Shown here: positions 216-64,000 of the stretch, one piece after another
Layout: the number at the start of each line of letters is the position of its first letter
Position numbering within the stretch: the first letter of the stretch is position 1
NCBI GenBank assembly: GCA_002269645.1
Contig: NIVC01000944.1
Location: 186,001-250,000 of the forward strand
Source: Macrostomum lignano
Taxonomy: Eukaryota
Reading direction: 5' to 3'
DNA length: 64,000 nucleotides
Position numbers and translations under genes: made by a program
Notes under the pieces: model-generated
Told to the model about the DNA's origin: nothing
What the model saw: only the letters and a program-made list of their open reading frames with translations
Database searches by the model: none

Positions 216-27622
<27,407 letters not shown>

Positions 27623-35660: not shown

Positions 35661-38600
35661 TCAAAGTGCGCAACGAGAATGCCAGCCAGCTGGTGCCGCA
35701 GCAGAAGCAGCACGGGGCCATCGCTGGCCGGCCCGCTGCTGCCAAGCGCAATCCTCTGGCTGAAATCCGACCGCGCCCCCTGCAGCAACAGAAAAGCAAA
35801 GAAGAGCCGGGGCGCGATGCCTGCGAGCTGCAGGGCATGGAGATTGACGAGGAGCAGCCGCAGCAACTGAGCATGGCCATTGAGCAGCCTGAGACCGATT
35901 TTCACGCACCCCTGCTGGCCCAGCTGCCCAAGGTTTTTGTCTTTACCGATGCTCTCCTTAGTAGATGCATTCCAGAGTGACTAGATGCATTCCAGAGTGA
36001 CTAGATGCATTCCAGAGTGACTAGATGCATTGCAGAATGACAAGACGCAATGCAGAATGACTAGATGTAATGCAGAGTGACTAGATGCATTCCAGAGTGA
36101 CTGGATGTATTTGAGAGTGACTAGATGCATTTCAGAGCGACTAGATGCATTTCAGAGTGACTAAATGAATTCCAGAGTGACTAAATGCATTTCAGAGTGA
36201 CTAGATGTATTACAGATTGACTAGATGCATTACAGAGTGACTAGATGCATTACAGATTGACTAGATGCATTCCAGGGTGACTAGATGCACTCCAGAGTGA
36301 CTAGATGCATTACAGATTGACTAGATGCATTACAGATTGACTAGATGCATTACAGATTGACTAGATGCATTACAGATTTACTAGATGCATTTCAGAGTGA
36401 CTAAATGCATTCCAGAGTGACTAAATGCATTCCAAAGAGACCTAGATGCATTCCAGAGTGACTAGATGCATTTCAGAGTGACTAAATGCATTTCAGAGTG
36501 ACTAGATGCACTCCAGAGTGACTAGATGCATTTCAGAGTGACTAAATGAATTCCAGAGTGACTAGATGCATTTCAGAGTGACTAGATGCACTCTAGAGTG
36601 ACTAGATGCATTTCAGAGTGACTAGATGCACTCCAGAGTGACTAGATGCATTGCAGTGACCAGATATTGCAGAGCCGTAGTGACCAGAGCACACAGATTC
36701 CGCAGCTCATTCTTGGTACCCAACTCCCCGCCGCTCAGATCGTGGACGTGGACACGGCGGACGAGAGCCGCCTGGACGCTCAGATGGTGTCGTGCTATGT
36801 CAAGGAGATTTTCTCTTACCTGCAGTCGCTGGAGGGCACGCAGCGAGTGAGGCGGGACTATCTGTGCCAGCCCGTGAAGCTGGAGATCACGCCCAGGATG
36901 CACCGGATTCTGTTCGACTGGCTTGTGCAGGCAAGTGGATTTTTAAACTTGACGATGCGAACCCGGAAATCAGACGTTTTAACAAATTTTATCCTTGTTT
37001 CAAGCAAAATAATAAATAAGGAGATCCGATCTTGATCGAAATCGGTTGTCCAGTTGCCAAGGATCCCCGAATCTGCCTACAGCGCAGCTCCAAACCAACC
37101 GCATAACCAGGTGCACCACCGGTTCGGCCTGCTGCCGGAGACCCTGTACCTGGCGCTGCACATCATCGACTACTACATGACCCAGGAGGGCCAGTCAGTC
37201 GGCAAGGACAACTACCAGCTGCTGGGCGTCTCCGCCCTGTTCCTGGCCGCCAAGGTAGAGGAGATCTATCCGCCCTACATCCAGGATCTGGTTAATCTGA
37301 CTGAGAACACCTGCCAGGGTGAGGCTGCGACCGCCGAGCCGGGGGAGAGGGTTGTCTGAGTTCAATGAGCTCAGTGCCTTTGGTGTCACAGCTGTCAGTG
37401 GGGGCTCATTGTGAAGGATCATGAGGGCCACAGCTGTCAGTGAGGGCTCATTGTGTAGGATCATGAGGGCCACAGCTGTCAGTGAGGGCTCATTGTGTAG
37501 GATCATGAGGGCCACAGCTGTCAGTGGGGGCTCATTGTGAAGGATCATGAGGGCAATTTCTCCCATTGTTTGCCACACTGCCGAACTCCCGCAGACTCGC
37601 AAATCCGCAAGATGGAGCGCCGGCTGCTGGCCGGCTTGGACTTCTTCTTCGGCTACCCGCAGCCGATTCTGTTCCTGCGCCGCTACAGCCGCGTCTCCGG
37701 CGCCACCGCCGAGGTGCACGACTGCGCCAAGTTCATCGCCGAGCTGGCCCGCTGCACCTACGACTCCGCCCACCTGCCTCCGTCGCTGCTGGCCGCTGCC
37801 GCCTTCTGCCTGGCCGTTGAGCTGCTAGCCGGCTACGGCCGCATCTGCGCCCAGCCGCAGTCCTGGCTGCCCGAGCTGGAGGTGTTCAGCGGCTACCTGA
37901 AGGCCGACCTGCTGCCAGCACTGCGGCTCCTGGCCAAGGCTGTGCTGGGGGCCTACTCGGATAAGAACAGGTGAGTGCTGGCTGTAGGGCCTTTAGGATT
38001 GTTAAGGACATCTATGTTCATTGTGTCAGGGCTTCATGCATGGTGTCAGGGCTTTAGACATTGTGTCACGGATCCATGCATGGTGTCAGGGCTTCAGGAA
38101 TTGTGTCAAGGATTGATGCATTGTCAGGGCTTCAAGAATTGTGTCAAGGATTGATGCATTGTCAGGGCTTCAGGAATTGTGTCAGGGATTGATGCACTGT
38201 GTCAGGGCTTCAAGCATGGTGTCACGGCTTCAGGCATTATGTCAGGGCTTCAGACATGGTGTCAGGGCTTCAGGAATTGTGTCAGGGCTTCAGGCATTGT
38301 GTCAGGGCTTCAGGCATTGTGTCAGGGCTTCAGGCATTGTGTCAGAGCCTTAGGCATTGTGTCAGGGCTTCAGACATGGTGTCAGGGCTTCAGGCATTGT
38401 GTCAGAGCCTTAGGCATTGTGTCAGGGCTTCAGGCATGGTGTCAGAGCTTCAGGCGTGGTGTCAGGGCTTCAGGCATTGTGTCAGCCTGTCAGGGCTTCA
38501 GGCATGGTATCAGGGCTTCAGGCATTATGTCAGGGCTTCAGGCATTATGTCAGGGCTTCAGACATGGTGTCAGGGCTTCAGGCATGGTATCAGGGCTTCA

Positions 38601-39127
38601 GGCATTATGTCAGGGCTTCAGACATGGTGTCAGGGCTTCAGGCATTGTGTCAGGGCTTCAGGCATGGTGTCAGGGCTTCAGGCATTGTGTCAGGGCTTCA
38701 GGCATGGTGTCAGAGCTTCAGGCGTGGTGTCAGGGCTTCAGGCATTGTGTCAGCCTGTCAGGGCCTCAGGCATGGTGTCAGGGCTTCAGGCATTGTGTTA
38801 GGGCTTCATGAATTGTATCAGGGCTTTAAGAATTGTCTCAGGGCATCATGCATTGTGTCAGGGCATCATGCATTGTGTCAGGGCATCATGCATTGTGTCA
38901 GGGCTTCATGCATTGTGTCAGGGCTTCATGCATTGTGTCAGGGCTCAATATACAGATCTTGGCCAAGCCCTCAAAGCCAGCAATCAAGCGGCAGTCGCCA
39001 CCCTCCTCGGCCCCGCAGGTTCACAGCGGTGCGCAAGAAATACGAGAGCCGCTCCTTTCAGTCGGTGAGCCTGTACCCGGAGTTCGACCCGGCCAGCCCG
39101 GTGCTGCAGTCCTACTCCAGCTGCTGA
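35661..39127 (+). CDS. CycB: B-type (mitotic) cyclin; first coding exon not located
   Basis: Exons 35661-35932, 36697(or 36673)-36930, 37111-37318, 37595-37970, 39019-39127. D-box-like RNPLAEI; cyclin box RILFDWLVQ|VHHRFGLLPETLYL...QLLGVSALFLAAKVEEIYPP; QIRKMER...FGYPQPILFLRRYS; C-terminal AVRKKY...F.SVS. The subtype (B1/B2/B3-like) is not resolved. Confidence 0.9.
35962..36660 (+). repeat. 20-bp minisatellite (GACTAGATGCATTCCAGAGT) x~35 in a cyclin B intron
   Basis: Directly visible. Confidence 0.97.
37387..37553 (+). repeat. 42-bp tandem repeat x~4 in a cyclin B intron
   Basis: CACAGCTGTCAGTGAGGGCTCATTGTGTAGGATCATGAGGGC repeated. Confidence 0.93.
38019..38945 (+). repeat. 20-bp minisatellite (TGTGTCAGGGCTTCAGGCAT) x~46 in the last cyclin B intron
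   Basis: Directly visible; source of the spurious ORFs at 38141-39127. Confidence 0.97.
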
Positions 39128-44741: not shown

Positions 44742-46779
44742 TCACAGCAGGTCTTCGATAGACCGGCCGGGCCGCACGCTGCCCATGACGAGCCGCACAA
44801 ACTCGCGGAAGTCGATCTGACCGTCGCCGTCGACGTCCGTCTCTTTTATCATGTCGCGGGCCTCCGCCATGGTTACGGGCTCGCCCAGGGCCGTCATGAA
44901 CGCCACCAGCTCCTCGGGGTCGATGGTCCCGGAGCCGTCGGTGTCAAACAAGGCGAACGCGCTCCGAAGGTCGGTGCGGGAGTCATCGGCGGTCAGGCCG
45001 CGGCAGAGCACGGAGACGAACTCGGTGAAGTCGATCTGCCCGTCTCCGTCGTCGTCCACGAAGTCCAGCATGGCCTGAGGGCGAAGGCGGGACGGCGAAG
45101 ACTTGCGATCGTCGTGATGTCAGTGTGTGGTGTGTCTGATGTCAGTGTGTGGTGTGTCTGATGTCAGTGTGTGGTGTGTCTGATGTCAGTGTGTGGTGTG
45201 TCTGATGTCAGTGTGTGGTGTGTCTGATGTCAGTGTGTGGTGTGTCTGATGTCAGTGTGTGGTGTGTCTGATGTCAGTGTGTGGTGTATCTGATGTCAGT
45301 GTGTGGTGTGTCTGATGTCAGTGTGTGTTGTGTCTGATGTCAGTGTGTGGTGTGTCTGATGTCAGTGTGTGGTGTGTCTGATGTCAGTGTGTGGTGTGTC
45401 TGATGTCAGTGTGTGTTGTGTCTGATGTCAGTGTGTGGTGTGTCTGATGTCAGTGTGTGGTGTGTCTGATGTCAGTGTGTGGTGTGTCTGATGTCAGTGT
45501 GTGGTGTGTCTGATGTCAGTGTGTGGTGTGTCTGATGTCAGTGTATGGTGTGTCTGATGTCAGTGTATGGTGTGTCTGATGTCAGTGTGTGGTGTATCTG
45601 ATGTCAGTGTGTGGTGTGTCTGATGTCAGTGTGTGTTGTGTCTGATGTCAGTGTGTGGTGTGTCTGATGTCAGTGTGTGGTGTGTCTGATGTCAGTGTGT
45701 GGTGTGTCTGATGTCAGTGTGTGGTGTGTCTGATGTCAGTGTCTGGTGTGTCTGATGTCAGTGTGTGGTGTGTCTGATGTCAGTGTGTGGTGTGTCTGAT
45801 GTCAGTGTGTGGTGTGTCTGATGTCAGTGTGTGGTGTGTCTGATGTCAGTGTGTGGTGTGTCTGATGTCAGTGTGTGTTGTGTCTGATGTCAGTGTGTGG
45901 TGTGTCTGATGTCAGTGTGTGGTGTGTCTGATGTCAGTGTGTGTTGTGTCTGATGTCAGTGTGTGGTGTGTCTGATGTCAGTGTGTGGTGTGTCTGATGT
46001 CAGTGTGTGTTGTGTCTGATGTCAGTGTGTGGTGTGTCTGATGTCAGTGTGTGGTGTGTCTGATGTCAGTGTGTGTTGTGTCTGATGTCAGTGTGTGGTG
46101 TGTCTGATGTCAGTGTGTGGTGTGTCTGATGTCAGTGTGTGGTGTGTCTGATGTCAGTGTGTGTTGTGTCTGATGTCAGTGTGTGGTGTGTCTGATGTCA
46201 GTGTGTGGTGTGTCTGATGTCAGTGTGTGGTGTGTCTGATGTCAGTGTGTGGTGTGTCTGATGTCAGTGTCTGGTGTGTCTGATGTCAGTGTGTGGTGTG
46301 TCTGATGTCAGTGTGTGTTGTGTCTGATGTCACTCTTGATGTGTCTGACCTTCATGTCCCAGTAATTCTGGGTAGTTACGCTAAGTTAGCTAAGTAACCA
46401 AGGCAATGCCTGAACGCTTAACCTGGCTCGAAAGATTTACACAAGGATCACTATAGAAGTTACCTTTGTACAAGGGTACGAGTATTTACATTGCCTAGCT
46501 GTCCAGAAGTCTGTCCAGCTGTAGCTTTCATGTTTCATGGTTTGTACGATTTATCTTAGCCAACAAAGCCTGCAGTCTCACCTGAACCTGCTCGTCCTTC
46601 GCTTTGTAGCCCAAGGTGCGCATGATGTAGGCCAGCTCCGAGTGCGAGATGAAGCCGTCGCCGTCTTTGTCGAAGTAGGCGAACGCGTCGCGGAACTCGG
46701 CAATCTGGGCGCTGTCCAAGTTGCTCACAACGCCCGTATCCCTCCGCTGCTGCGGCTGCTCAGGCTGCTGGGCAGACAT
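44742..46779 (-). CDS. Calmodulin-like four-EF-hand protein (~176 aa)
   Basis: Exons 46582-46779 and 44742-45074, phase-0 GT-AG intron. EF loops DKDGDGFISHSE, DDDGDGQIDFTE, DTDGSGTIDPEE, DVDGDGQIDFRE; QIAEFRDAFAYFD opening. Confidence 0.92.
45113..46333 (+). repeat. 20-bp minisatellite (GTGTGGTGTGTCTGATGTCA) x~61 filling the calmodulin-like intron
   Basis: Directly visible; very homogeneous. Confidence 0.98.
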
Positions 46780-47357: not shown

Positions 47358-48126
47358 TCAGGTCGCAGCTTTGCGCAGCGCTTCAAAAGTCGTGGCGAGA
47401 TCCCGGACCAACTTCTGCGTCTCCTTGATCTGGCCGGCCTGCGCCTCCAGACCGTTCAGAATGTTCACCAGAGCTTCGTTCGCCTGCGATACGATTGGTG
47501 CGAGCATATGCTCAAGGTTTGGCCTCCGCTTCAGCAGTCCCTTCAGCTTGTTCAGCCCCTTCTTCAAGTGACGGAAGACGTTCAGCTTGCGGAATATCCT
47601 CCGGATCCTCGGCAGACGGAGTCTAAAGCGCCGCAGGCGGATCCTCGGCAGGCGGATCCTCGGAAGGCGGATCCTCGGAAGGCGGATCCTCCGAAGGCGG
47701 ATTCTCGGCAGGCGGATCCTCGGCAGGCGGATCCTCGGCAGGCGGATCCTCGGTAGGCGGAAGCGGAAACGCCTCCATTTCTGCTGCAGTTGGACTTCTT
47801 CTTCGGGACTCAGATCGTACTGTTGTGGGCGAAGCATTGCAACGATAAGGTTAAAACACGCCGGATGCGACGGTACGGGGAGCTGTTTGATTTCTCACCA
47901 CATCGGGGTCGTCCAGCAGCTCCAGCGCCTCCAGGTTGTCCGCCTCAGCCTCGTCAGCGGGCTCCAACAGGTTCTCCTCTACTGGAGACTCCGCTTCGGC
48001 TGCCAGCTTCTCCTCGGGTTCCGCGGCCACCGCCTCACCCAGGTGGGCGGCTGCGGCTCCTAGGAGCAGCAGCAGCAGCGGCAGCAGGTGCAACCGGTAG
48101 CCGGTGAGCATTTTCCCGGTAGCCAT
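47358..48126 (-). CDS. Secreted precursor A (229 aa): signal peptide, acidic propiece, QQKW, (LPRIR)n Arg/Pro-rich region, amphipathic basic segment, coiled-coil-like tail
   Basis: Exons 47899-48126 and 47358-47819; 79-bp phase-0 intron GTGAG...CAACAG. Spliced junction reads LELLDDPDV|[26 protein letters not shown]. Confidence 0.85.
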
Positions 48127-48182
48127 GCCTGTAGCAGAGCTGGGGTGCGAGAGACGCGGGCCTGAGAGCTGCGCGGGCACCG

Positions 48183-48218
48183 CTTTTATGCAGCCGCCCG
48201 AAACCCGGATTCCCCGCG
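48183..48218 (-). promoter_or_regulatory. TATA-like box plus upstream GGGGAATCC (kB-like) motif of precursor A
   Basis: Sense CGCGGGGAATCCG-N15-CATAAAAG, 57 bp above the ATG; a similar arrangement occurs at precursor B. Confidence 0.45.
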
Positions 48219-48446
48219 TGAATCCGTCTTTTGCTTCTGACAAAAGGAAAACAGGGGGGGGGGGCAGCAATTCCCGGAGCTCTGAGTCCCGCCTCCGTGC
48301 CGGCCGAATTCCGGATGTGAGAGGCTGCAGACTGCAGGCCTCAAGTTGACGCAGAGCTTTTCTTTTCGCGTGAGCAGTACAGGAACAATGAAGATGGACG
48401 TAAATTTTCGCGAAGATCCGCGGATCATCCAGACTGGCTCAGACTA

Positions 48447-48538
48447 GCGTGATGTCTGCGTGATGTCTGCGTGATGTCTGCGTGATGTCTGCGTGATGTC
48501 TGCGTGATGTCTGCGTGATGACTGCGTGATGTCTGCGT
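48447..48538 (+). repeat. 11-bp tandem repeat (GTGATGTCTGC) x~8
   Basis: Directly visible. Confidence 0.95.
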
Positions 48539-49049
48539 GGAAGCAGGCATGCTTGATGTTTTTTAACCCTAGCGAGTTCTAACGATTCAAAACACGCAAG
48601 TAGCGATCGGAATGAGAAATCATGCATTGATTCGTCTCTCCCTGTCCCATTTCAGAGTTTTGTTTTACAAATACTGCTCACCACCTTGTCAAAGTTTCCA
48701 TTTTAAAATTATGCAATCGCATCTTTGCATTTTTCATGTTTTACAAAATTTAATCAATTAACAAAGAAAAAGCAAAATATATTGATTTTTCATAACGGAA
48801 AGAGTAAATACGAGATACGCTCGTAGCTGTTCAAATTTATTAATATTTAGCGCTTGTTTCACTCGAAGAGTTGCAATAATCACTACAGGATGTTTAGTCA
48901 CGCATGTAATTACTGGAAACCGTAAAGTCTATAATTATATATGGAGCTGTAAGTTTCTCATTCATTAACCTCTCTGAGACATAAATCATAGCTATTTATT
49001 GTCCGCAGTTCTCAATTGAGCTCAGCAACCCGGGCCAGTCGGGATTGCC

Positions 49050-49514
49050 TCAGCCGACGCGGCGGCTCAGGGACTCCTGGTCGCGCGCCAGCCGCAGCAC
49101 CGCCTGCTGGATCTGCGCCAGACCCTTGGACTGCGCCTGCATCTCGTTGCTCATCTGCTGCATGACATCGCTGAGGCGGTTGATGGCGCTCGTTGGCCTC
49201 ATGCGGGCGGCCTCCGCCAAGCGGGCGCGCATGCCGCTGAAGTCGGTGCGCAGGCTGCTGAAGCGGGGCGTCCACTTCTGCTGCTGGCTGAGGCTCGACT
49301 GGAATGCGCAGGGTCAGGAGGGTCAAGAGGTCAGTCAGGGCGAGTAGCCACTCAAGTCAATTTTCGGGTGCGAGTCTCAAGTTAATACTTAGTTAAGACT
49401 TACGTCATCAATCTCAGCAGCTCCATCCGAAGAGTCGGGCTCACTTTGAGCAGCGGCTGCTCCTAGAAGCAGCAGCACGGCGAGGGCCGCGGTGGGAAGC
49501 AGTTGGGTGCGCAT
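49050..49514 (-). CDS. Secreted precursor B (119 aa), paralogue of precursor A without the LPRIR repeat
   Basis: Exons 49404-49514 ([37 protein letters not shown]) and 49050-49298 (SSLSQQQKWTPRFSSLR...ESLSRRVG*); 105-bp phase-0 intron GTAAGT...TTCCAG. Confidence 0.85.
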
Positions 49515-49610
49515 TGCGTTGCGTTCGTCTCTGTGGGGCTTCTTGAGCTCGGGCTGGGTCTGAGGTCTCGGGTCGAGAGATGAAGGCCTCGCGGCCACTC
49601 GGCCTGGCGG

Positions 49611-49645
49611 CTTTTTATTGCGCCGGCAATCCGGGATTCGCCGCG
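49611..49645 (-). promoter_or_regulatory. TATA-like box plus CGCGGCGAATCCCG motif of precursor B
   Basis: Sense CGCGGCGAATCCCG-N11-CAATAAAAAG, about 97 bp above the ATG. Confidence 0.4.
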
Positions 49646-50094: not shown

Positions 50095-51399
50095 AGTGAA
50101 TGTGAATCCGAGTGTTAGTGTGAATGTGAACCTGAGTGTTAGTGTGAATGTGAATCTGAGTGTTAGTGTGAATGTGAATCCGAGTGTTAGTGTGAATGTG
50201 AATCTGAGTGTTAGTGTGAATGTGAATCCGAGTGTTACTGTGAATGTGAATCCGAGTGTCAGAGTGAATGTGAATCCGAGTGTTAGTGTGAATGTGAATC
50301 CGAGTGTTAGTGTGAATGTGAATCCGAGTGTTAGTGTGAATGTGAATCCGAGTGCGAGAGTGAATGTGAATCCGAGTGTTAGTGTGAATGTGAATCCGAG
50401 TGCGAGAGTGAATGTGAATCCGAGTGTTAGTGTGAATGTGAATCTGAGTGTTAGTGTGAATGTGAATCTGAGTGTTAGTGTGAATGTGAATCTGAGTGCA
50501 AGTGTGAATGCGAATCTGAGTGTTAGTGTGAATGTGAATCTGAGTGTTAGTGTGAATGTGAATCTGACTGTTAGTGTGAATTTGAATCTGAGTGTTAGTG
50601 TGAATGTGAATCTGAGTGCAAGTGTGAATGTGAATCTGAGTGTTAGTGTGAATGTGAATCTGAGTGTTAGTGTGAATGTGAATCCGAGTGTTAGTGTGAA
50701 TGTGAATCCGAGTGTCAGAGTGAATGTGAATCCGAGTGTTAGTGTGAATGTGAATCCGAGTGTTAGTGTGAATGTGAATCCGAGTGTTAGTGTGAATGTG
50801 AATCCGAGTGCGAGAGTGAATGTGAATCCGAGTGTTAGTGTGAATGTGAATCCGAGTGCGAGAGTGAATGTGAATCCGAGTGTTAGTGTGAATGTGAATC
50901 TGAGTGTTAGTGTGAATGTGAATCTGAGTGTTAGTGTGAATGTGAATCTGAGTGCAAGTGTGAATGTGAATCTGAGTGTTAGTGTTAATGTGAATCTGAG
51001 TGTTAGTGTGAATGTGAATCCGAGTGTTAGTGTGAATGTGAATCTGAGTGCTAGTGTGAATGTGAATCTGAGTGTTAATGTGAATGTGAATCTGAGTGTT
51101 AGTGTGAATGTGAATCTGAGTGTCAGAGTGAATGTGAATCTGACTGTTAGTGTGAATGTGAATCTGAGTGCTAGTGTGAATGTGAATCTGAGTGTTAGTG
51201 TGAATGTGAATCTGAGTGTTAGTGTGAATGTGAATCCGAGTGTTAGTGTGAATGTGAATCTGAGTGTTAGTGTGAATGTGAATCTGAGTGTTAGTGTGAA
51301 TGTGAATCTGAGTGTCAGAGTGAATGTGAATCTGAGTGTTAGTGTGAATGTGAACCTGAGTGTTAGTGTGAATGTGAATCTGAGTGTTAGTGTGAATGT
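50095..51399 (+). repeat. 24-bp satellite (GTGAATGTGAATCTGAGTGTTAGT) x~54, intergenic
   Basis: Directly visible; source of the spurious 439-aa VNVNLSVS ORF. Confidence 0.98.
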
Positions 51400-51766
51400 T
51401 TATCTGCTTCAGTAGCTGCCTCGATAACAGCTAGCGTAAAAAGCTACAGAAATTTTTTGCGATATGCACTACTTATCCAGTCTGGCCAGTAGTGACCATA
51501 GACTTTAAATGTACACGTAAATTAAATTTTGTCAATGCACTTTTAAAAATGATGCAGGAATGTTGACAAACAGCTTTAGTATAACCTTGAACTCTTGAAC
51601 TTTGGTGGCTCAGTGTCGTATTTTATTGAGACAAGGCAATAAATCACAGTATTTAACATGCAGCATAGCAATTTTGTATTTAAAAATCATATACTGATCA
51701 CATGGCATTGAAACAGCAAAGTCTCGGCCTGCTTCCAATGTACACAGCGCGGCCTCAGGTGCGGCC

Positions 51767-54700
51767 TCAGGTGAAGAAGTACTGCATCTCCTCCTCCTCC
51801 CTGTTCAGCCGCTCGTTCTCCCCGTCGTCCTTCTTGCGCACCGCGGGCGGGTTGCTGCGCGCCATGACCCGGCGGCCCTCGTACTTCTTGGGAGGCTCCT
51901 TCGCGCGCTCCAGGGCGCGGCGCACGCGCTCCTCCTGGCGCAGGCGCTCCTGCTCCTTCTTGTCCTCGCGGGCCTTCAGCCGGCGCTCCTTGTCTTTGGA
52001 CTGCGGCGGGCGGCAGGGTGGGGGTCAACAGAACGGCAATGATAAAATTTGAATTCGCGCGAAAAGTTAAAATACGCTTTGTAGTTACTGCAGCGAAAAG
52101 CAGGCACAGAGTTCCGAGTTTGCGGCTTAAATTGGCACCACCATTTTTTACTAGAGGCAGGGACTGTGTGCACCTGGCGTACTTGAAGCGACATAGGCAC
52201 ACAACCGGCGAGAGGCATTGCTGCCCATTCCGCCGACTCCCCTGAGCAGGCACACAAGCGCGCGGATACGTACGCAGGCACACACTCACACAGGAGTGTA
52301 CAGCGGCCCTAATGTTATTTATCGTTAGGCATGTACACTTCACCGTGCCTGTGTCGTCTAGCAGTTCAAAACCATGAAAGCCAAGAGTGTACATGCCTGA
52401 CGATTAGAAAGTCAGGGCCACTGTACACGCTGTGTGAGCTGTGTGTATGAGTTGGTGCCTGCATACAGTATTGGCGCACTTGTGTGTGCTCAGGTGTCAG
52501 TGGAATGAGCAGGATTGGGTAGCCGCAGCTCTCCTGCGGTTATTATTATTTTCCATGGCTAGCGGTCTCGTCATCTCACCTTTTGAGCAGCTTCCACCAG
52601 CTCAGGCGGCAGCAGCTCCAGGGTCTGGAACAGGTACTCAATGCGGTTCTCGATGTCCGTGAGCATCTGCAGGGTGCTGGAGTGACAGGTAGGTGAAATG
52701 TCTGTGAGGCACAATGCGATAGAGATTTTGTTCGACACCAAGACTAATACACTAAAACTAAACTAGCAGAACAAAGACTTAAAATAGACAGTGAAAAATC
52801 CGTGCAATTTATTTGATCGTGCAAGTCAGCGGCACGATGCGGCAGCTCCAGTCTACGTACAGAGTGTGAAAGTTCGGTTCTAATGCAGCTCTGAGGCTGA
52901 GACCTGTTCGAAGTCTGGCTACTGCGGTGCTTTGAGCAGGCAGTCGGTGAGTGATTGACTGGGTGCACAACTTAGTGACCTTTAACGGCCCCTGTGCGTT
53001 GCTTGTGGAAGCTTTGGACAGGCAGATGGCATAGGACTCAGCATTCACGACCCATTTCTACATGACTCACTTCCATTCACGATCCATTTCTACATGACTC
53101 ACTTCCATTCACGACCCATTTCTACATGACTCACTTCATTCACGACCCATTTCTACATGACTCACTTCCATTCACGACCCATTTCTACATCACTCACTTC
53201 ATTCACGACCCATTTCTACATGACTCACTTCATTCACGACCCATTTCTACATGACTCACTTCCATTCACGACCCATTTCTACATGACTCACTTCATTCAC
53301 GACCCATTTCTACATGACTCACTTCATTCACGACCCATTTCTACATGACTCACTTCCATTCACGACCCATTTCTACATCACTCACTTCCATTCACGACCC
53401 ATTTCAACATGACTCACTTCATTCTTGACCCATTTCTACATGACTCACTTCATTCTTGACCCATTTCTACATGACTCACTTCCATTCACGACCCATTTCT
53501 ACATGACTCACTTCCATTCACGACCCATTTCTACATGACTCACTTCCATTTACGACCCATTTCCACATCACTCACTTCCATTCACGACCCATTTCTACAT
53601 GACTCACTTCATTCTTGACCCAGCTTCACCATCTGCACATCAGCATCATGTGTTGCAATCTCAGTTAAGCATGAGGAAGCCACCTGAGCCACACAACATT
53701 CACAGCCCATTCCATCACGTGACCGACTGCAGCCCAGACTGCTGCTGTCCAAGCAGTCCCCATGCAGAGTCTGAGAGCGCAGCCGCCGCACTCACTCCAG
53801 CGGATTGATCATCCGCTTGCCGTCCTGGCGCGTTGGCGCGCTTCCGCCGCCGACCTCGTCGCTAATTAAATTTGAATTCCCAGGGATTTTGTTAATATTG
53901 GCTTGTTTCAATTTCTCCCAAGCAAATTTTACGGGTTGTTTTGTTTCACGGGTTGATGAGCAGTAAAATAAAAAGGTGGTAATTTGAAATATTGAAAAGC
54001 AAACATAAAAGCGGACCAAGTCCTGTTTTACTTAAGCAATGCTCATTTGGCAACTTGTGCTCACCTGATGCTGGCCTCATTATCGCCGAAGCAGGCCCTG
54101 TACACCTCCTCCACCTTGCCGTTCAGGCTCTGCAGCATCTCCTCCTGTTCCTCTGCGTCCAGCTTCCCGAATGAGAACAGCCTGTGGGTTGATGGGGAAC
54201 TCACTGATGAGGCCAGGGGCAGCTGAGGTCACTGACAGCTGGGAGAAGGGTCAGCTGAGGTCACTGACAGCTGGGAGACAGGGGCAGCTGAGGTCACTGA
54301 CAGCTGGGAGACAGGGGCAGCTGAGGTCACTGACAGCTGGGAGACAGGGGCAGCTGAGGTCACTGACAGCTGGGAGACAGGGGCAGCTGAGGTCACTGAC
54401 AGCTGGGAGACAGGGGCAGCTGAGGTCACTGACAGCTGGGAGACAGGGGCAGCTGAGGTCACTGACAGCTGGGAGACAGGGTCAGCTGAGGTCACTGACA
54501 GATGGGAGACAGGGTCAGCTGAGGTCACTGACAGCTGGGAGACAGGGGCAGCTGAGGTCACTGACAGATGGGAGACAGGGTCAGCTGAGGTCACTGACAG
54601 CTGGGAGACAGGGGCAGCTGAGGTCACTGACAGCTGGGAGACAGGGTCAGCTGAGGTCACTGACAGCTGGGAGACAGGGGCAGCTGAGGTCACTGACAGC

Positions 54701-55198
54701 TGGGAGACAGGGTCAGCTGAGGTCACTGACAGCTGGGAGACAGGGTCAGCTGAGGTCACTGACAGCTGGGAGACAGGGTCAGCTGAGGTCATAGTCGGAG
54801 CCACTCACTTGCACTTGATCTCCAGCTCCCGAGCCTTGGACTCCTCGCGCTCGATGGACTTGTTGAGCTTGTCGATTTGCTCGTTGAGCGTCTTGGTCTC
54901 CCTGTCCATCCGGCGGCTGAGGATCTGGTTGGACTGGCGCAGCTCCTCCAGGGTCTCCTCGGACTCCTGGCAGTTCTGGATGAGGTTCAGGTTGGACTCC
55001 TCCAGCTCGGTGAAGATCTGCAGCAGCTCCTGCGGCTTGCTGAAGTAAAGCTCCAGGTCCTGCGGGCGCGGTTGGGTAACTGATTGACTGACTGACTGAC
55101 TGACTGACTGACTGACTGACTGACTGACTGACTGACTGACTGACTGACTGACTGACTGACTGACTGACTGACTGACTGACTGACTGACTGACTGACTG

Positions 55199-55416: not shown

Positions 55417-58400
55417 AAACAAACAAACTAACTAACTAAATAACTAACTAACTGACTAACCAACTAACTAACTAACTCACCTCCTCATCATCGCTCTCCA
55501 CCTCGGCCAAGAACCGCTCCAGGGCAGCCCGGCTGTTCTCATCCTCATCCAGGGCCCTGGACAGTAGATGAGCAATAGAAATCGAGCGTTTAAATTCGTG
55601 CGAACAGAAACATACAAGTTTAAACAAACGAAAATTTATACGGAAGCGACAGTGGCGGAGAGTTTACTGAATTTCTGGCTCAGTTCATCAACTACTACTG
55701 GCAGCAATAACACGAGAGCTGATAGGTGTTACTAAATAAACATACTTTGACTCCAAAGACTCGCTAAAAAATAAAAATCATCCGAAGCTCGGAAACTTTA
55801 AAAACCGAACAGCTTTTAACAAAAAGATAAACACAGTCACAGTAGCGCCTGTTTGGCGCAATATACCTTTTTTTAAACTCTTAGTCAGCATTTAGTCAGC
55901 CTAAAAGCGATGGGCTGCAAAGCGCATTCACCTGCTGATGAGATTCGCTAGTTGGGTCGGGGAATCAGTAGAGTCAGAGGCCAAGCCAAGGGAGAGTCTG
56001 GGTAGTCAGCTGGAATTTGAAGAGAGTCAAGAGGGTCAGGTCAGGAAGGTCTTGGGAGATTGGGAGATTGGGAGATTGGGGGAGCTTCAGAGAGAGAGTC
56101 AGGGAGAGTCAGGAGGGTCAGAGAGAGTCAGGAGGGTCAGGGAGAGTCAGGAGAGTCAGGGAGAGTCAGGAGGGTCAGGGAGAGTCTGGAGGGTCAGGGA
56201 GAGTCAGGAGGGTCAGGGAGAGTCAGGAGGGTCAGGGAGAGTCAGGAGTGTCAGGGAGAGTCAGGAGGGTCAGGGAGAGTCAGGAGGGTCAGGGAGAGTC
56301 AGGGAGGGCAGGAAGGAGAGTCGGGAGGGCAGGAGGGAGAGTCAGGAGGGTCAGGAGGGTCAGGGAGAACCAGGAAGGGCACGAGAGAGAGTCAGGGAGA
56401 ATCAGGAGGGTCTGAGAGAATCAGGAGTCTGGGGAGTCAGAAGGGTCAACGGAGAGTCGTGAGGGTCAGGGAGAGTCAGGAGGGTCAGTGAGAGTCAGGA
56501 GGGTCAGGGAGAGTCAGGAGGGTCAGGGAGAGTCAGGAGGGTCTGGGAGAGTCAGGAGGGTCAGGGAGAGTCAGGAGGGTCAGGGAGAGTCAGGAGGGTC
56601 AGAGAGAGTCAGGAGGGTCAGGGAGAGTCAGGAGGGTCAGGGAGAGTCTGGAGGGTCAGGGAGAGTCAGGAGGGTCAGAGAGAGTCAGGAGGGTCAGGGA
56701 GAGTTAGGAGTGTCAGGGAGAGTCAGGAGGGTTAGAGAGAGTCAGGAGGGTCAGGGAGAGTCAGGGAGGGCAGGAGGGAGAGTCAGGAGGGTCAGGAGGG
56801 TCAGGGAGAACCAGGAAGGGCAGGAGAGAGAGTCAGGGAGAATCAGGAGGGTCTGAGAGAATCAGGAATCTGGGGAGTCAGAAGGGTCAGGGAGAGTCAG
56901 GAGGGTCAGGGAGAGTCAGGAGGGTCAGGGAGAGTCAGGAGGGTCAGGGAGAGTCAGGAGGGTCAGGGAGAGTCAGGAGGGTCAGGGAGAGTCAGGAGGG
57001 TCAGAGAGAGTCAGGAGGGTTAGAGAGAGTCAGGAGGGTCAGGGAGAGTCAGGAGGGTCAGGGAGAGTCAGGAGGGTCAGGGAGAGTCAGGAGGGTTAGA
57101 GAGAGTCAGGAGGGTCAGAGAGAGTCAGGAGGGTCAGGGAGAGTCAGGAGGGTTAGAGAGAGTCAGGAGGGTCAGAGAGAGTCAGGAGGGTTAGAGAGAG
57201 TCAGGAGGGTCAGGGAGAGTCAGGAGGGTCAGGGAGAGTCAGGAGGGTTAGAGAGAGTCAGGAGGGTCAGGGAGAGTCAGGAGGGTCAGAGGGGTTAAGG
57301 GAGTCAGAGGAAACCACAGGAGTCTTTGAGTCAGGGGGATCAGGTGGTCAGCAGTCACCCAGCATCCGGTATCTGCAACCCCGGGTTCCCCAGCACCACA
57401 GGCAAGACAAATCGAGCGCTCAGCCAGCAGGAAGCTGCGCACCGCCTCAGAGAACAACAAAGAGAACTGAACGACATTTCAAAGCAGCGGAGGGGCAGCC
57501 GCGCAAGCAGAAAAAACTGACAGGCGCTTTCTTTCGGCCGCCCTGCGCCGCAGCCTTCCGACTGCGCTGAGGGCGCCAAGGGTGGCCAGGAGGCCCGCGC
57601 CGCCCCCCGCTGCGGGAGACGGCGGCGAGCGGCTGATGAAGGGCGCCGACGACCGTCCGCTCCTGAGGATTCGGGCAGGGAGTTCAGTGCAGCCGCCGCG
57701 GCTTCTGGCTGCCCAGAGCGGCGGACTCCGGGCTTCTCTGCTGAGTTCTTCATGGCACTGCGTCTGTGACTGCTGCCTGGGCCTGCCTCCAGCCTCTCTG
57801 CCTCTTTGGCTCCCTGCCTCCCTGCCTCCCTGCCTCTCTGCCTCCCTGCCTCCCTGCCTCCCTGCCTCCCTGCCTCGCTACCTCCCTGCCTCTCTGCCTC
57901 TCTGCCTCGCTACCTCCCTGCCTCTTTGCCTCTCTGCCTCTTTGGCTCCCTGCCTCTGCCTCCCTGCCTCTGCCTCCCTGCCTCTCTGCCTCTCTGCCTC
58001 CCTGCCTCTTTGCCTCCCTGCCTCTCTGCCTCCCTGCCTCTCTGCCTCTCTGCCTCGCTACCTCCCTGCCTCTTTGCCTCTCTGCCTCTTTGGCTCCCTG
58101 CCTCTGCCTCCCTGCCTCTGCCTCCCTGCCTCTCTGCCTCTCTGCCTCCCTGCCTCTTTGCCTCCCTGCCTCTTTGCCTCCCTGCCTCTCTGCCTCCCTG
58201 CCTCTCTGCCTCCCTGCCTCTCTGCCTCCCTGCCTCGCTACCTCCCTGCCTCTCTGCCTCTCTGCCTCGCTACCTCCCTGCCTCTCTGCCTCTCTGCCTC
58301 TTTGGCTCCCTGCCTCTGCCTCCCTGCCTCTGCCTCCCTGCCTCTCTGCCTCTCTGCCTCCCTGCCTCTTTGCCTCCCTGCCTCTCTGCCTCCCTGCCTC

Positions 58401-61400: not shown

Positions 61401-64000
61401 CCTCCAGCCTCTCTGCCTCTCTGCCTCTCTGCCTCTCTGCCTCCCTGCCTCTCTGCCTCCCTGCCTCCCTGCCTCTCTGCCTCTTTGGTTCCCCGCCTCC
61501 CTGCCTCTCTGCCTCTCTGCCTCTCTGCCTCCCTGCCTCTCTGCCTCCAGCCTCTCTGCCTCCAGCCTCTCTGCCTCCAGCCTCTCTGCCTCCCTGCCTC
61601 TCTGCCTCCAGCCTCTCTGCCTCCAGCCTCTCTGCCTCCCTGCCTCCCTGCCTCTCTGCCTCCAGCCTCTCTGCCTCCCTGCCTCCCTGCCTCTCTGCCC
61701 TCAGCCTCCCTGCCTCTGCCTCCCTGCCTCTCTGCCTCCCTGCCTCTCTGCCTCTCTGCCTTCAGCCTCCCTGCCTCTCTGCCTCCCTGCCTCTCTGCCT
61801 CCCTGCCTCTACCTCCCTGCCTCTACCTCCCTGCCTCTGCCTCCCTGCCTCTGCCTCCCTGCCTCTCTGCCTCTCTGCCTCCCTGCCTCTCTGCCTCCCT
61901 GCCTCCCTGCCTTTCTGCCTCCCTGCCTCCCTGCCTCTCTGCCTCCCTGCCTCTGCCTCCCTGCCTCTGCCTCCCTGCATCTGCCTCCCTGCCTCTGCCT
62001 CTCTGCCTCTCTGCCTCCCTGCCTCCCTGCCTCTCTGCCTCCCTGCCTCCCTGCCTCTCTGCCTCCCTGCCTCCCTGCCTCTCTGCCTCCTCTGCCTCCC
62101 TGCCTCAGCCTCCCTGCCTCTCTGCCTCCCTGCCTCTGCCTCCCTGCCTCTCTGCCCTCTGCCTCCCTGCCTCTGCCTTCAGCCTCCCTGCCTCTCTGCC
62201 TCCCTGCCTCCCTGCCTCCCTGCCTCTCTGCCTCTGCCTCCCTGCCTCCCTGCCTCCCTGCCCCTGCCTCCCTGCCTCTCTGCCTCCCTGCCTCTGCCTC
62301 CCTGCCTCTCTGCCTCCCTGCCTCTGCCTTCAGCCTCCCTGCCTCTGCCTTCAGCCTCCCTGCCTCTGCCTTCAGCCTCCCTGCCTCTCTGCCTTCAGCC
62401 TCCCTGCCTCTCTGCCTCCCTGCCTCTGCTTCCCTGCCTCTCTGCCTCCCTGCCTCTGCCTTCAGCCTCCCTGCCTCTGCCTTCAGCCTCCCTGCCTCTG
62501 CCTTCAGCCTCCCTGCCTCTGCCTTCAGCCTCCCTGCCTCTGCCTTCAGCCTCCCTGCCTCTCTGCGTTCAGCCTCCCTGCCTCTCTGCCTTCAGCCTCC
62601 CTGCCTCTCTGCCTTCAGCCTCCCTGCCTCTCTGCGTTCAGCCTCCCTGCCTCTCTGCCTTCAGCCTCCCTGCCTCTCTGCGTTCAGCCTCCCTGCCTCT
62701 CTGCCTCCCTGCCTCTGCCTTCAGCCTCCCTGCCTCTGCCTTCAGCCTCCCTGCCTCTGCCTTCAGCCTCCCTGCCTCTGCCTTCAGCCTCCCTGCCTCT
62801 GCCTTCAGCCTCCCTGCCTCTCTGCCTCCAACACACTGTCTCCAACACACTGTCTCCTTCAAATATCAGTGTCTCCCTCTGTTACCTGAGCATCTTGATC
62901 TCACTGTCTCCCTCTAATCTCACTGTCTCCCTCTAATCTCACTGTCTCCCTCTAATCTCACTGTCTTCCTCTAATCTCACTGTCTCCCTCTAATCTCACT
63001 GTCTCCCTCTAATCTCACTGTCTCCCTCTAATCTCACTGTCTCCCTCTAATCTCACTGTCTCCCTCGTCGATTTTCTTCCGTCTCTCCCTTTTGTATACT
63101 ACTACTCACAATGAACGATGCAGCACATAATTTTTACTGTAAAATTTGATAAAATTTAAAAGTGCATCAGAAAAACCAGTTGCAATGTCCCCGCCGGTCC
63201 GCAGCCCAGCCCAGCTCACTTCAGCGAGGTGCCGGTCTTCTCCTTCTGCTGCGAGCTGCTGCCGGCCGCTCCCGCCGACTCCTTGATGGACACCCGGCCC
63301 GCCCTGCTGGCCTTGCTGGCCCGGCTCACGTCCGTCTTCTCCCGGTCCGCCGCCCCCGGAGCTGCCGAGGTTGCCGTGGCCGCCTTTGCCGCCGCCTTCG
63401 CCTCCTTGCGGGCGCGGCGCCGCTGGCGCTCCTCCTCGGGCATGAGCCGCTCCAGGAACTCCTTGTAGGCCAGGTACTCGCGCAGCTGCTCCTCGAACTT
63501 GGTGATCTCCGACTTCATCTGCGTGAGCTGGGCGTTCAGCCGTTTGATCTCGTTCACCTTCTGCAGCTTCGCCTTCGCCTCCTCATCAGCTCTGCGGGTT
63601 TGAAGTGGTTGGTCTGGGGGTGTTGCTCCGGATTGGGAAGGGTGTTGCTCCGGATTGGGAAGGGTGTTGCTCCGGATTGGGAAGGGTGTTGCTCCGGATT
63701 GGGAAGGGTGTTGCTCCGGATTGGGAAGGGTAGTGAAGGGTATTGCTATGGGTTCTAAGTGGGTATTGCTAGAAAAGTCTTTGTGTCTGAGGAAATTGCT
63801 TTGACTAATAGCTCGTATGCAGTATTAAGCAAATCCGAACGGAACTCCAATATTGGGGTGGCGAGTTTCACAGGCCGCTCACATGCGAATGGCCTCGGCA
63901 GAGTTCTTGTTGTTCTCCTTCAGGAACTCGTCGAACATGGACGCGTCCTCCTCCAGGTACTGCTCCGCCATCTCCAGCTTCTTCTCCTCGGCCGCTGCCA
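51767..64000 (-). CDS. CFAP100: Cilia- and flagella-associated protein 100 (CCDC37; DUF4200 family), 5' part outside the window
   Basis: Exons 63883->64000 ([31 protein letters not shown]), 63220-63591, 57359-57757 (internal structure uncertain), 55481-55556, 54809-55059 ([37 protein letters not shown]), 54065-54181, optional 53796-53861, 52580-52676 ([15 protein letters not shown]), 51767-52000 ([11 protein letters not shown]...[10 protein letters not shown]). All phases are compatible. Confidence 0.88.
53041..53621 (+). repeat. 31-32-bp minisatellite x~18 in a CFAP100 intron
   Basis: CATTCACGACCCATTTCTACATGACTCACTT(C) repeated. Confidence 0.96.
54216..54790 (+). repeat. 33-bp minisatellite x~17 in a CFAP100 intron
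   Basis: CAGCTGAGGTCACTGACAGCTGGGAGACAGGGG repeated. Confidence 0.97.
55079..55476 (+). repeat. Compound (CTGA)n-(CTAA)n microsatellite filling a CFAP100 intron
   Basis: Directly visible; abuts the donor at 55480. Confidence 0.97.
56089..57290 (+). repeat. 20-bp purine-rich minisatellite (GAGAGTCAGGAGGGTCAGGG) in a CFAP100 intron
   Basis: Directly visible; a variant block at about 56300-56450 recurs at about 56760-56890. Confidence 0.96.
57770..62828 (+). repeat. ~5.1-kb pyrimidine-rich (CCTG/CCTCTCTG/CCTCC) complex satellite in a CFAP100 intron
   Basis: Directly visible; source of three 1700-aa spurious ORFs. Confidence 0.98.
62899..63064 (+). repeat. 19-bp tandem repeat (CTCTAATCTCACTGTCTCC) x~8.5
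   Basis: Directly visible. Confidence 0.95.
63617..63728 (+). repeat. 22-bp tandem repeat (GGGTGTTGCTCCGGATTGGGAA) x5
   Basis: Directly visible; in the CFAP100 intron 63592-63882. Confidence 0.95.

Follow-up and report, generated by a model that had tools for sequence, protein, structure and literature searches.

We analysed a 64,000-nucleotide stretch of the genome of the flatworm Macrostomum lignano (contig NIVC01000944.1, positions 186,001 to 250,000 of the forward strand, assembly GCA_002269645.1), here called the window, and found that its positions 47358 to 49514 hold two real, spliced and transcribed genes with secretion signals, A and B, whose products equal GenBank models based on RNA-seq. 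This agrees with an original prediction made from the DNA letters. The product of gene A consists of a signal peptide, an acidic pro-region, an arginine-rich block built on the pentapeptide RIRLP, a cationic amphipathic helix and a helical tail, while that of gene B carries a short basic middle segment between its acidic region and its helical tail. The two genes are probably tandem paralogues; B is best explained as the repeat-less paralogue of A, and the pair as restricted to its lineage. A may be the charge-masked precursor of a cationic effector, resembling the precursors of antimicrobial peptides, the reading that we favour, though tentatively.

Gene models and their annotation

Both genes lie on the minus strand, adjacent to each other, with two exons each and a phase-0 intron inside the acidic region (Table 1). 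Gene A encodes 229 residues, and its product is 100% identical to PAA74498.1 (BOX15_Mlig026096g1, model P0002); it also has a second in-frame ATG at 48111. Gene B encodes 119 residues, which form the coding part of PAA74499.1 (BOX15_Mlig013400g1, model P0009). Both proteins are named "hypothetical protein, partial" in GenBank, and they are labelled partial because the 5' untranslated region (UTR) was translated. The M. lignano annotation draws on assembled RNA-seq reads, on trans-splicing and poly(A) data and on TransDecoder (PMC5730564). Since it is RNA-based, both introns that had been proposed from the letters are independently supported, the junctions of A and of B being present in its models. 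The N-terminal hydrophobic cores of A and B end in AAA, as signal peptides do, which suggests that both proteins are secreted.

The common layout had also been read correctly: a shared signal end, an acidic spacer interrupted by a phase-0 intron, the motif QQKW past that intron and an Arg-rich middle all lie where they had been placed. The motif occupies residues 88–91 of A and 43–46 of B, with its W 14 and 8 residues past the respective splice junctions. As for the charged residues, the counts of 22 D/E in the acidic region of A and 6 in that of B stand, while the block W91–R150 of A contains 28 Arg and not 27, and the middle segment of B has 6–7. An acidic pro-region thus precedes a very cationic segment in A, where the repeat plus helix (W91–R175) reaches a net charge of +38. 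The corresponding blocks of B carry only -5 and then +6.

The Arg-rich block of A is encoded by a DNA tandem repeat of 15 bp (8.6 copies, 93% matching, 47633..47761). In another frame of the minus strand (47623..47778) this repeat reads (EDPPA)n, an acidic, Pro-rich open reading frame (ORF) of 51 residues; it is the RIRLP frame, not the (EDPPA)n frame, that connects with the flanking exons and the annotated protein. Residues 151–175 have a hydrophobic moment of up to 0.68 at 100 degrees and are helical in the AlphaFold2 (AF2) model. After its signal peptide A contains no cysteines.

Upstream of both genes lies a block with shared motifs. The GenBank models P0002 and P0003 have their 5' ends about 25–30 nt downstream of the TATA-like box of A. 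We infer that the upstream block of B acts as a promoter, and go no further because its TATA-like box falls inside the longer 5' UTR or read-through models P0001 and P0012. The latter (UniRef A0A1I8GUT5, 452 aa, named 'J domain-containing protein') is a read-through model on the minus strand from ~51700 to ~49711, in which the last exon of a DUF4200 gene is joined, across a 24-bp minisatellite, to an acceptor (...tttgag/CCGCGAAAATC) that lies on the upstream side of B. Polycistronic transcripts split by trans-splicing, which have been described in M. lignano, may account for this model. The spacer between B and A contains an 11-bp tandem repeat, GCGTGATGTCT (8.5 copies, 97% matching, 48447..48539).

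Paralogy, gene copies and selection

Tandem paralogy, which the original prediction had proposed, is borne out by collinear DNA similarity between adjacent, co-oriented genes. We compared the DNA of A and B against dinucleotide shuffles (500 for exon 1). Exon 1 aligns with a z of 6.1, a score reached by 0 of the 500 shuffles; the alignment pairs the second ATG of A with the ATG of B and includes the common string CTGCTGCT[C/T]CTAGGAGC. The 200 nt upstream give a z of 4.2, sharing GAATCC(C/G)GG, the TATA-like ATAAAAG and AGGCC..TCTCTCG, and the DNA of QQKW-xRF gives 2.6. A Fisher combination of exon 1, upstream region, QQKW-xRF and the tail test described below yields p ~1e-5. Neither the introns nor the downstream regions of the two genes align. 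At the protein level, comparison of Smith-Waterman scores with shuffles yields z values of 3.5 (signal peptide) and 2.2 (acidic region with QQKW), and BLASTP finds E 0.096 around QQKW, which is not significant.

The tails of A and B had been described as alignable and heptad-patterned. The second part stands, with an a/d heptad bias of 0.75 in A (p 0.025) and 0.79 in B (p 0.001). Their similarity, on the other hand, is marginal: they share 22% identity with a BLAST-type E of ~3, and a Smith-Waterman score of 41 corresponds to z 3.9 and p 0.006 against plain shuffles, and to z 2.5 and p 0.024 when the hydrophobic/polar pattern is preserved. The tail as a demonstrated conserved module is not supported.

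Contig NIVC01000939.1 (L001) carries a homeologous locus with the same gene order, namely the DUF4200 gene, B', A' and an EF-hand gene. B' (Mlig012871) differs from B by 2 residues (synonymous divergence, dS, 0.036; ratio of nonsynonymous to synonymous divergence, dN/dS, 0.21), and A' (Mlig030454) is 84% identical to A and contains ten perfect RIRLP units, with charge blocks of -19 and +35. Between A and A', dN/dS is 0.39 overall; it rises from 0.13 in the head through 0.29 in the repeat to 0.53 in the tail. The length differences of the repeat block preserve the reading frame, and the tribasic KRR of A is kept as RRK in A', though the flanking residues have diverged. A third copy, A'', lies between A' and the EF-hand gene; it lacks a promoter, its acidic region and its repeat are frameshifted, and it is therefore a pseudogene. 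A tblastn search of the window and L001 with A and B revealed no further paralogue besides A''. Compared with these copies (47358..48200 against L001 9960..12400), A is a mosaic. From promoter through intron it is 97–100% identical to A', while from ~47566 to the stop (the last ~200 nt) it is 93–100% identical to A'' (L001 11626..12338) and only 71–90% to A', which indicates unequal crossing-over or gene conversion between copies of the cluster.

Purifying selection, frame-preserving variation in repeat length and transcripts annotated from both copies lead us to regard A and B as functional coding genes. That they are instead young lineage-specific genes with little or no function, the Arg-rich block being a recently expanded 15-bp microsatellite that lies in frame by chance, is highly improbable. 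Such an origin would fit the near-identical repeat units at the DNA level (the 93% matching given above), their varying number among A, A' and A'', a window full of minisatellites and the orphan status of B. It is at odds with dN/dS values of 0.2–0.4 that stay at 0.29 inside the repeat itself, with a frame kept across length variants, with annotated transcripts for both subgenome copies, and with the occurrence of the same peptide repeat, written in varied codons, in other organisms.

The history of the cluster also bears on a reproductive role, in which A and B would be rapidly evolving seminal-fluid or prostate-gland proteins and the cationic block would act on the partner's tissues or sperm. 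Lineage restriction, the copy-number change, mosaicism and pseudogene of the cluster, and the higher dN/dS in the tail of A all suit this role, and rapidly evolving reproductive genes are common in Macrostomum (PMC7336406 and PMC5977470). The identifiers of both genes, however, do not occur in 3 Mb of PMC7336406 supplements that classify reproduction-related transcripts, which is weak evidence, as the files may be incomplete, and dN/dS is below 1 throughout. We consider a reproductive role quite improbable.

Relatives in other organisms and the possible function of gene A

We searched for family members with two word-indexed searches (5.8 billion proteins) and an exhaustive phmmer search of B (1.84 billion representative proteins). 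The word-indexed search returned only M. lignano copies of B, and the exhaustive one only B itself. The 90% cluster of P0001, which holds B, also contains unrelated metagenomic peptides of 39–47 residues (MNEAASSVEPKVKTRF...); it is a clustering artefact, and its '12 member sequences' therefore overstate the copies of B. In Pfam scans, A, B, A', the isolated tails, P0004 and P0019 showed nothing but noise below the threshold for family assignment (TetR, RH1, MCPsignal, ANIS5), and searches of PDB sequences yielded no more than weak matches of a helical or low-complexity kind (KKT4, apoA-I, apoB-100). Neither A nor B is thus claimed by any characterised family in the Pfam, PDB sequence and phmmer searches, in line with the earlier failure to recognise the family.

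One assignment is already in the databases. UniProt names a near-identical copy of B, A0A1I8H630, 'DUF148 domain-containing protein', which would make B a member of the nematode SXP/RAL-2 family (DUF148, PF02520), and PF02520 is indeed the top, weak Pfam match for B and for P0011. Like SXP/RAL-2 proteins, B is small, apparently secreted and predicted to be all-helical. The matches, however, stay below the gathering cut-off of 29.3 bits, at 16.0 for B and 14.5 for P0011, with E values of 0.013–0.039, and cover only positions 33–92 of the 109 in the profile; no match to Ani s 5 (2MAR) appears among PDB sequences at E <= 10, and the exhaustive phmmer search gives no DUF148 protein. Moreover, the family is described as confined to nematodes, the wrong phylum for B, and as having six helices, a calmodulin-like fold and the SXP1 and SXP2 motifs (PMC3945735). 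We give membership next to no credence, and the sequence matches do not support the 'DUF148' label.

For A, the word-indexed search returned its paralogue A' and a single foreign protein, P0004 (E 3.9e-7), which is 87% identical to A in the repeat. With P0004 as query we obtained P0016–P0018 and P0019, five unnamed transcript-like contigs in all. P0004 and P0016–P0018 come from Joint Genome Institute (JGI) metatranscriptome collections (Tara-like), and P0019 from Logan SRR26183960. The former four come from contigs of 1.0–1.4 kb and, as one of these has a poly(A) tail, look like eukaryotic mRNAs. Their proteins consist of a signal peptide, a D/E/N-rich region, DP(L/VP)W-RR[WF]R[FI]R, (PRIR[ILVF])n and a helical, Cys-rich domain of about 130 residues with an invariant C-x2-H-x2-C-x2-C. 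P0019 passes from its signal peptide directly to W-GRFRFR-(LPRIR)n, followed by a Cys region, EF-hands and an acidic tail. A metagenome scan added a few short PRIR-repeat ORFs in unrelated contexts, one of them (L008) again with an acidic tail.

Three properties of these relatives are relevant for A. Firstly, W is invariant at the start of the Arg-rich block, and in P0019 it stands directly after the predicted signal-peptide cleavage site; the W after QQK, which had been picked out as the beginning of the Arg-rich segment in A, agrees with this. Secondly, the repeat units differ by synonymous codons, which therefore points to selection on the peptide itself. Thirdly, an acidic block accompanies the basic one in each of them (Table 1). 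The proposal that acidity scales with basicity rests on two genes within the window and gains some outside support from the near-cancelling blocks of P0004 and P0016. The boundary between the two blocks reads KKDPLW in P0004 (L002), QRDPVPW in P0016 (L004), KHDPLW in P0017 (L005) and KKDPLW in P0018, i.e., K/R-(X-Pro)1-2-(L)W, a pattern that could correspond to a basic cut followed by dipeptidyl-peptidase trimming. Outside the repeat we detected no homology of A to these proteins, which contain neither QQK nor an A-type helical tail. AF2 and Foldseek gave no significant fold for the P0016 family, the fungal phospholipase A2 (PLA2) 4aup at E 3.3 being a lead only.

These comparisons suggest that the part recurring across organisms is the cationic block with its accompanying acidic block, and that the C-terminal domain varies. 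This is the opposite of the cassette model of the original prediction, in which a conserved frame with a conserved tail carries hypervariable cargo; that model is not supported, as the searches named above recovered only A, A', the pseudogene A'', B and B'. Together with an acidic region of matching charge, the W-RRFRFR-(PRIRx)n block might represent an undescribed cationic effector module under selection, common to a flatworm and several other marine eukaryotes by descent or repeated invention, and combined with varied C-terminal domains (a tail that is helical, EF-hands, or a Cys-rich domain with a possible resemblance to a phospholipase). We regard this as rather doubtful; if true, gene A would be the first genomically anchored, experimentally tractable example of the module.

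For A itself we propose the following mechanism. The signal peptide would route the protein into the secretory pathway, and the acidic pro-region (net -20) would electrostatically shield the Arg-rich W91–R175 in transport and storage. Cleavage near K90/W91 and at K173-R-R175 would free a highly cationic peptide, whose targets would be polyanionic and most plausibly the membranes of microbes. The helical C-terminal part could be freed as a peptide of its own at KRR175/P176, and B would give a helical peptide of ~74 residues with a net charge of +6. The conserved W boundary and the tribasic site kept in A and A' suggest processing. In this working model, charge masking, both cleavage points and a role in host defence are all inferred.

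Several observations weigh against this proposal. B has no strongly cationic cargo, and the ancestral function common to the pair may therefore lie elsewhere. The acidic block of A neutralises only about half of the basic charge, and cleavage at K/W, a monobasic site, would be unusual. AF2 modelled A, from a single sequence, with low confidence (predicted local distance difference test, pLDDT, 57). What A shares with the foreign relatives sits in a repeat of low complexity and may have arisen by convergence; the Tara-type relatives have no dibasic site after the repeat, which therefore probably stays attached to their Cys-rich domain. The gene identifiers are absent from literature full text and from the searchable supplements of M. 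lignano papers, and a full-text literature search likewise returned none of the peptide strings searched for. We favour the proposal with limited confidence, because B has no strongly cationic part, and because secretion, processing, tissue and activity are all presumed.

Part of this evidence suits a different arrangement, in which A and B are not processed and act as structural or condensate-forming secretory proteins. Acidic and basic blocks would pair between molecules (complex coacervation) and the tail would self-associate, forming the dense contents of granules, for instance rhabdite, mucus, adhesive or eggshell matrix. In favour of this are the block-polyampholyte layout, with near-exact neutralisation in P0004 and P0016, the predicted disorder of the repeat, the amphipathic tails with heptad bias, and the relatives, in which no dibasic site follows the repeat and it stays joined to other domains. 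Against this stand the small size of the proteins (229 and 119 residues), the missing basic block of B, and the conserved boundary W and tribasic sites, which suggest processing. The adhesive proteins of M. lignano are reportedly different, very large proteins. We consider this arrangement unlikely.

Processing at the basic sites could alternatively serve the tail. A and B would then be hormone- or neuropeptide-type precursors with an active C-terminal helical peptide, of ~47 residues after RMR in B, where a terminal Gly could be the amide donor, and of 54 after KRR in A. Both tails open with Pro directly after the basic site (KRR/P and RMR/P), B ends in ...RRVG-stop, and the tail is the best-modelled part, predicted to be helical; the layout of B presumably resembles the CRH/ELH/DH44 type. 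However, neither the full proteins nor the isolated tails match CRF (PF00473) or another hormone family in Pfam at E <= 10; A ends in ...KAAT and A' in ...AAVSA, without terminal Gly; the tail has the highest dN/dS of gene A; and a large conserved cationic repeat would be left unexplained. A hormone precursor is an improbable explanation.

Features of the window and comparison with known systems

Table 1 Features of genes A and B and charge blocks of the foreign relatives (window coordinates unless residues are given).
Feature	Position	Strand	Description
Gene A exon 1	47899..48126	-	Signal peptide (48126..48046) and most of the acidic pro-region; start ATG 48126
Gene A intron	47820..47898	-	79 nt, GTGAGA..ACAG, phase 0; junction ...DDPDV/YDLSP found in P0002
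Gene A exon 2	47358..47819	-	End of acidic region, QQKW (47786..47775), Arg-rich block, cationic helix, helical tail, stop
A signal peptide	residues 1-27		Net charge +2
A acidic pro-region	residues 28-90		Net charge -20, 22 D/E
A cationic block W91-R150	47598..47777	-	WRRFRF + (RLPRI)n, R-h-R-h-P period, net +28, predicted disordered
A cationic amphipathic helix I151-R175	47523..47597	-	Net +10; ends in tribasic KRR; predicted helix
A near-neutral amphipathic helical tail P176-T229	47361..47522	-	Net -1; AF2 helix 176-228, pLDDT 70-83
Gene A upstream block shared with B	48140..48218	-	GAATCCGGG, TATA-like ATAAAAG (48189..48183), AGGCC..TCTCTCG
Gene B exon 1	49404..49514	-	ATG 49514; signal peptide (49514..49449, residues 1-22) and start of acidic region
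Gene B intron	49299..49403	-	105 nt, GTAAGT..CCAG, phase 0; junction ...EIDD/SSLSQ in RNA-based models P0001 and P0009
Gene B exon 2	49050..49298	-	QQKW (49283..49272), basic middle W46-R71, helical tail P72-G119 (49196..49053), stop
Polyadenylation-type signal AATAAA	48995..49000	-	~50 nt past the B stop; putative function
Gene B upstream block shared with A	49567..49645	-	GAATCCCGG motif, TATA-like AATAAAAAG (49619..49611), AGGCC..TCTCTCG
P0004 net charge			Acidic -30, basic +31
P0016 net charge			Acidic -27, basic +31
P0017 net charge			Acidic -23, basic +31
P0018 net charge			Acidic -17, basic +30
P0019 net charge			Acidic -35, basic +20

Directly downstream of A lies a calmodulin-like EF-hand gene (46779..44742, minus strand) with a 22-bp minisatellite of 56 copies in an intron. 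The EF-hands of P0019 prompted us to consider a functional link between A and this neighbour, which we rejected; the neighbour is an ordinary calmodulin-like gene and the similarity is generic. Upstream of B lies the DUF4200 coiled-coil gene (63557..63216, minus strand). On the plus strand, a cyclin gene with Cyclin_N and Cyclin_C exons occupies 36646..37974, and a series of exon-like ORFs at 266..15490, with WSC (PF01822) and C-type lectin (PF00059) domains and repeated Cys-rich units, probably represents a single large gene for a multi-domain protein, either secreted or a receptor. Mini- and microsatellite arrays are very dense (4826-5675, 35962-36656, 38019-38945, 45115-46348, 50096-51406, 53042-53622, 54214-54791, 56094-57289 and 57783-62828). 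One of them spans 5 kb, with ~650 copies of CTGCCTCT and extreme GC and AT skew, and such arrays produce long spurious ORFs.

Both genes are already present in GenBank and UniProt, unnamed or mislabelled. We found no prior description of the pair as diverged tandem paralogues, of the module that pairs an Arg-rich pentapeptide repeat with an acidic block of matching charge, or of its occurrence in other marine eukaryotic transcripts, and a literature search turned up no flatworm host-defence peptide of the type of A. Lineage-restricted secreted proteins are common in flatworm genomes, and RNA interference (RNAi) is available in M. lignano. Transgenesis exists as well (PMC5730564). With these two tools, a charge-masked cationic effector would be directly testable in this animal. 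Should the repeat and acidic block of A and of the marine transcripts prove to be one module, secreted cationic proteins would have gained a new building block, which might also serve as a new peptide scaffold. Should A and B be ordinary lineage-specific secretory proteins, the value of the analysis would be limited to annotation, with splice models confirmed and the label of B found unsupported.

Among known systems, the antimicrobial peptides of Hydra are taxon-restricted, tandemly duplicated and have a bipartite layout of negative and positive charge (PMC10945409). Specifically, arminin and periculin precursors share with A and B a signal peptide followed by negative and positive blocks, restriction to a single genus, tandem paralogues and the lack of homologues elsewhere (PMC10945409). 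They differ in that there is no sequence similarity, and the cationic part of arminins is C-terminal, whereas A continues into a further helical tail; the cargo of A is a proline-punctuated Arg pentapeptide repeat, and activity has been shown for the Hydra peptides, while that of A is surmised from its sequence.

Cathelicidins of the Bac5, Bac7, PR-39 and BMAP/CAP18 types release cationic peptides from precursors with an N-terminal pro-region. Like some of these, A contains an Arg- and Pro-containing repetitive cationic stretch, and its residues 151–175 resemble a helical antimicrobial peptide in charge and hydrophobic moment. In contrast, A has no cathelin domain (no such Pfam match at E <= 10), and its pro-region is a simple acidic stretch. 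Proline-rich antimicrobial peptides also differ from A, which has ~15% Pro, at most one Pro per five residues in W91–R150, no PRP or PP, and a strict R-h-R-h-P pattern. In alpha-defensins and the eosinophil major basic protein, an anionic segment of the pro-piece balances the cationic mature part until cleavage; the same principle of anionic masking may apply to A, whereas sequences and folds are different and the putative mature part of A has no cysteines.

P0004 and P0016–P0019 share with A the signal peptide, the acidic region and W-RR[FW]R[FI]R-(PRIR[ILVF])n with charges of +20 to +31, the sole cross-species similarity detected for A. They differ in carrying a C-terminal Cys-rich domain, or a Cys region with EF-hands and an acidic tail, and as the similarity is confined to the repeat, common descent is unproven. 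AHNAK/periaxin and apolipoprotein B-100 (apoB-100) show the same period-5 polar/hydrophobic pattern with Pro, and the best PDB sequence match of the A repeat is apoB-100 2704-2747 (E 0.18, not significant). These are huge intracellular or lipoprotein scaffolds with mixed charges, whereas the charges of the A repeat are all Arg. Judged by sequence layout, the bipartite anionic/cationic secreted precursor appears to be the only fit at the level of a class, and A and A' both have its order of signal, anionic block and cationic block.

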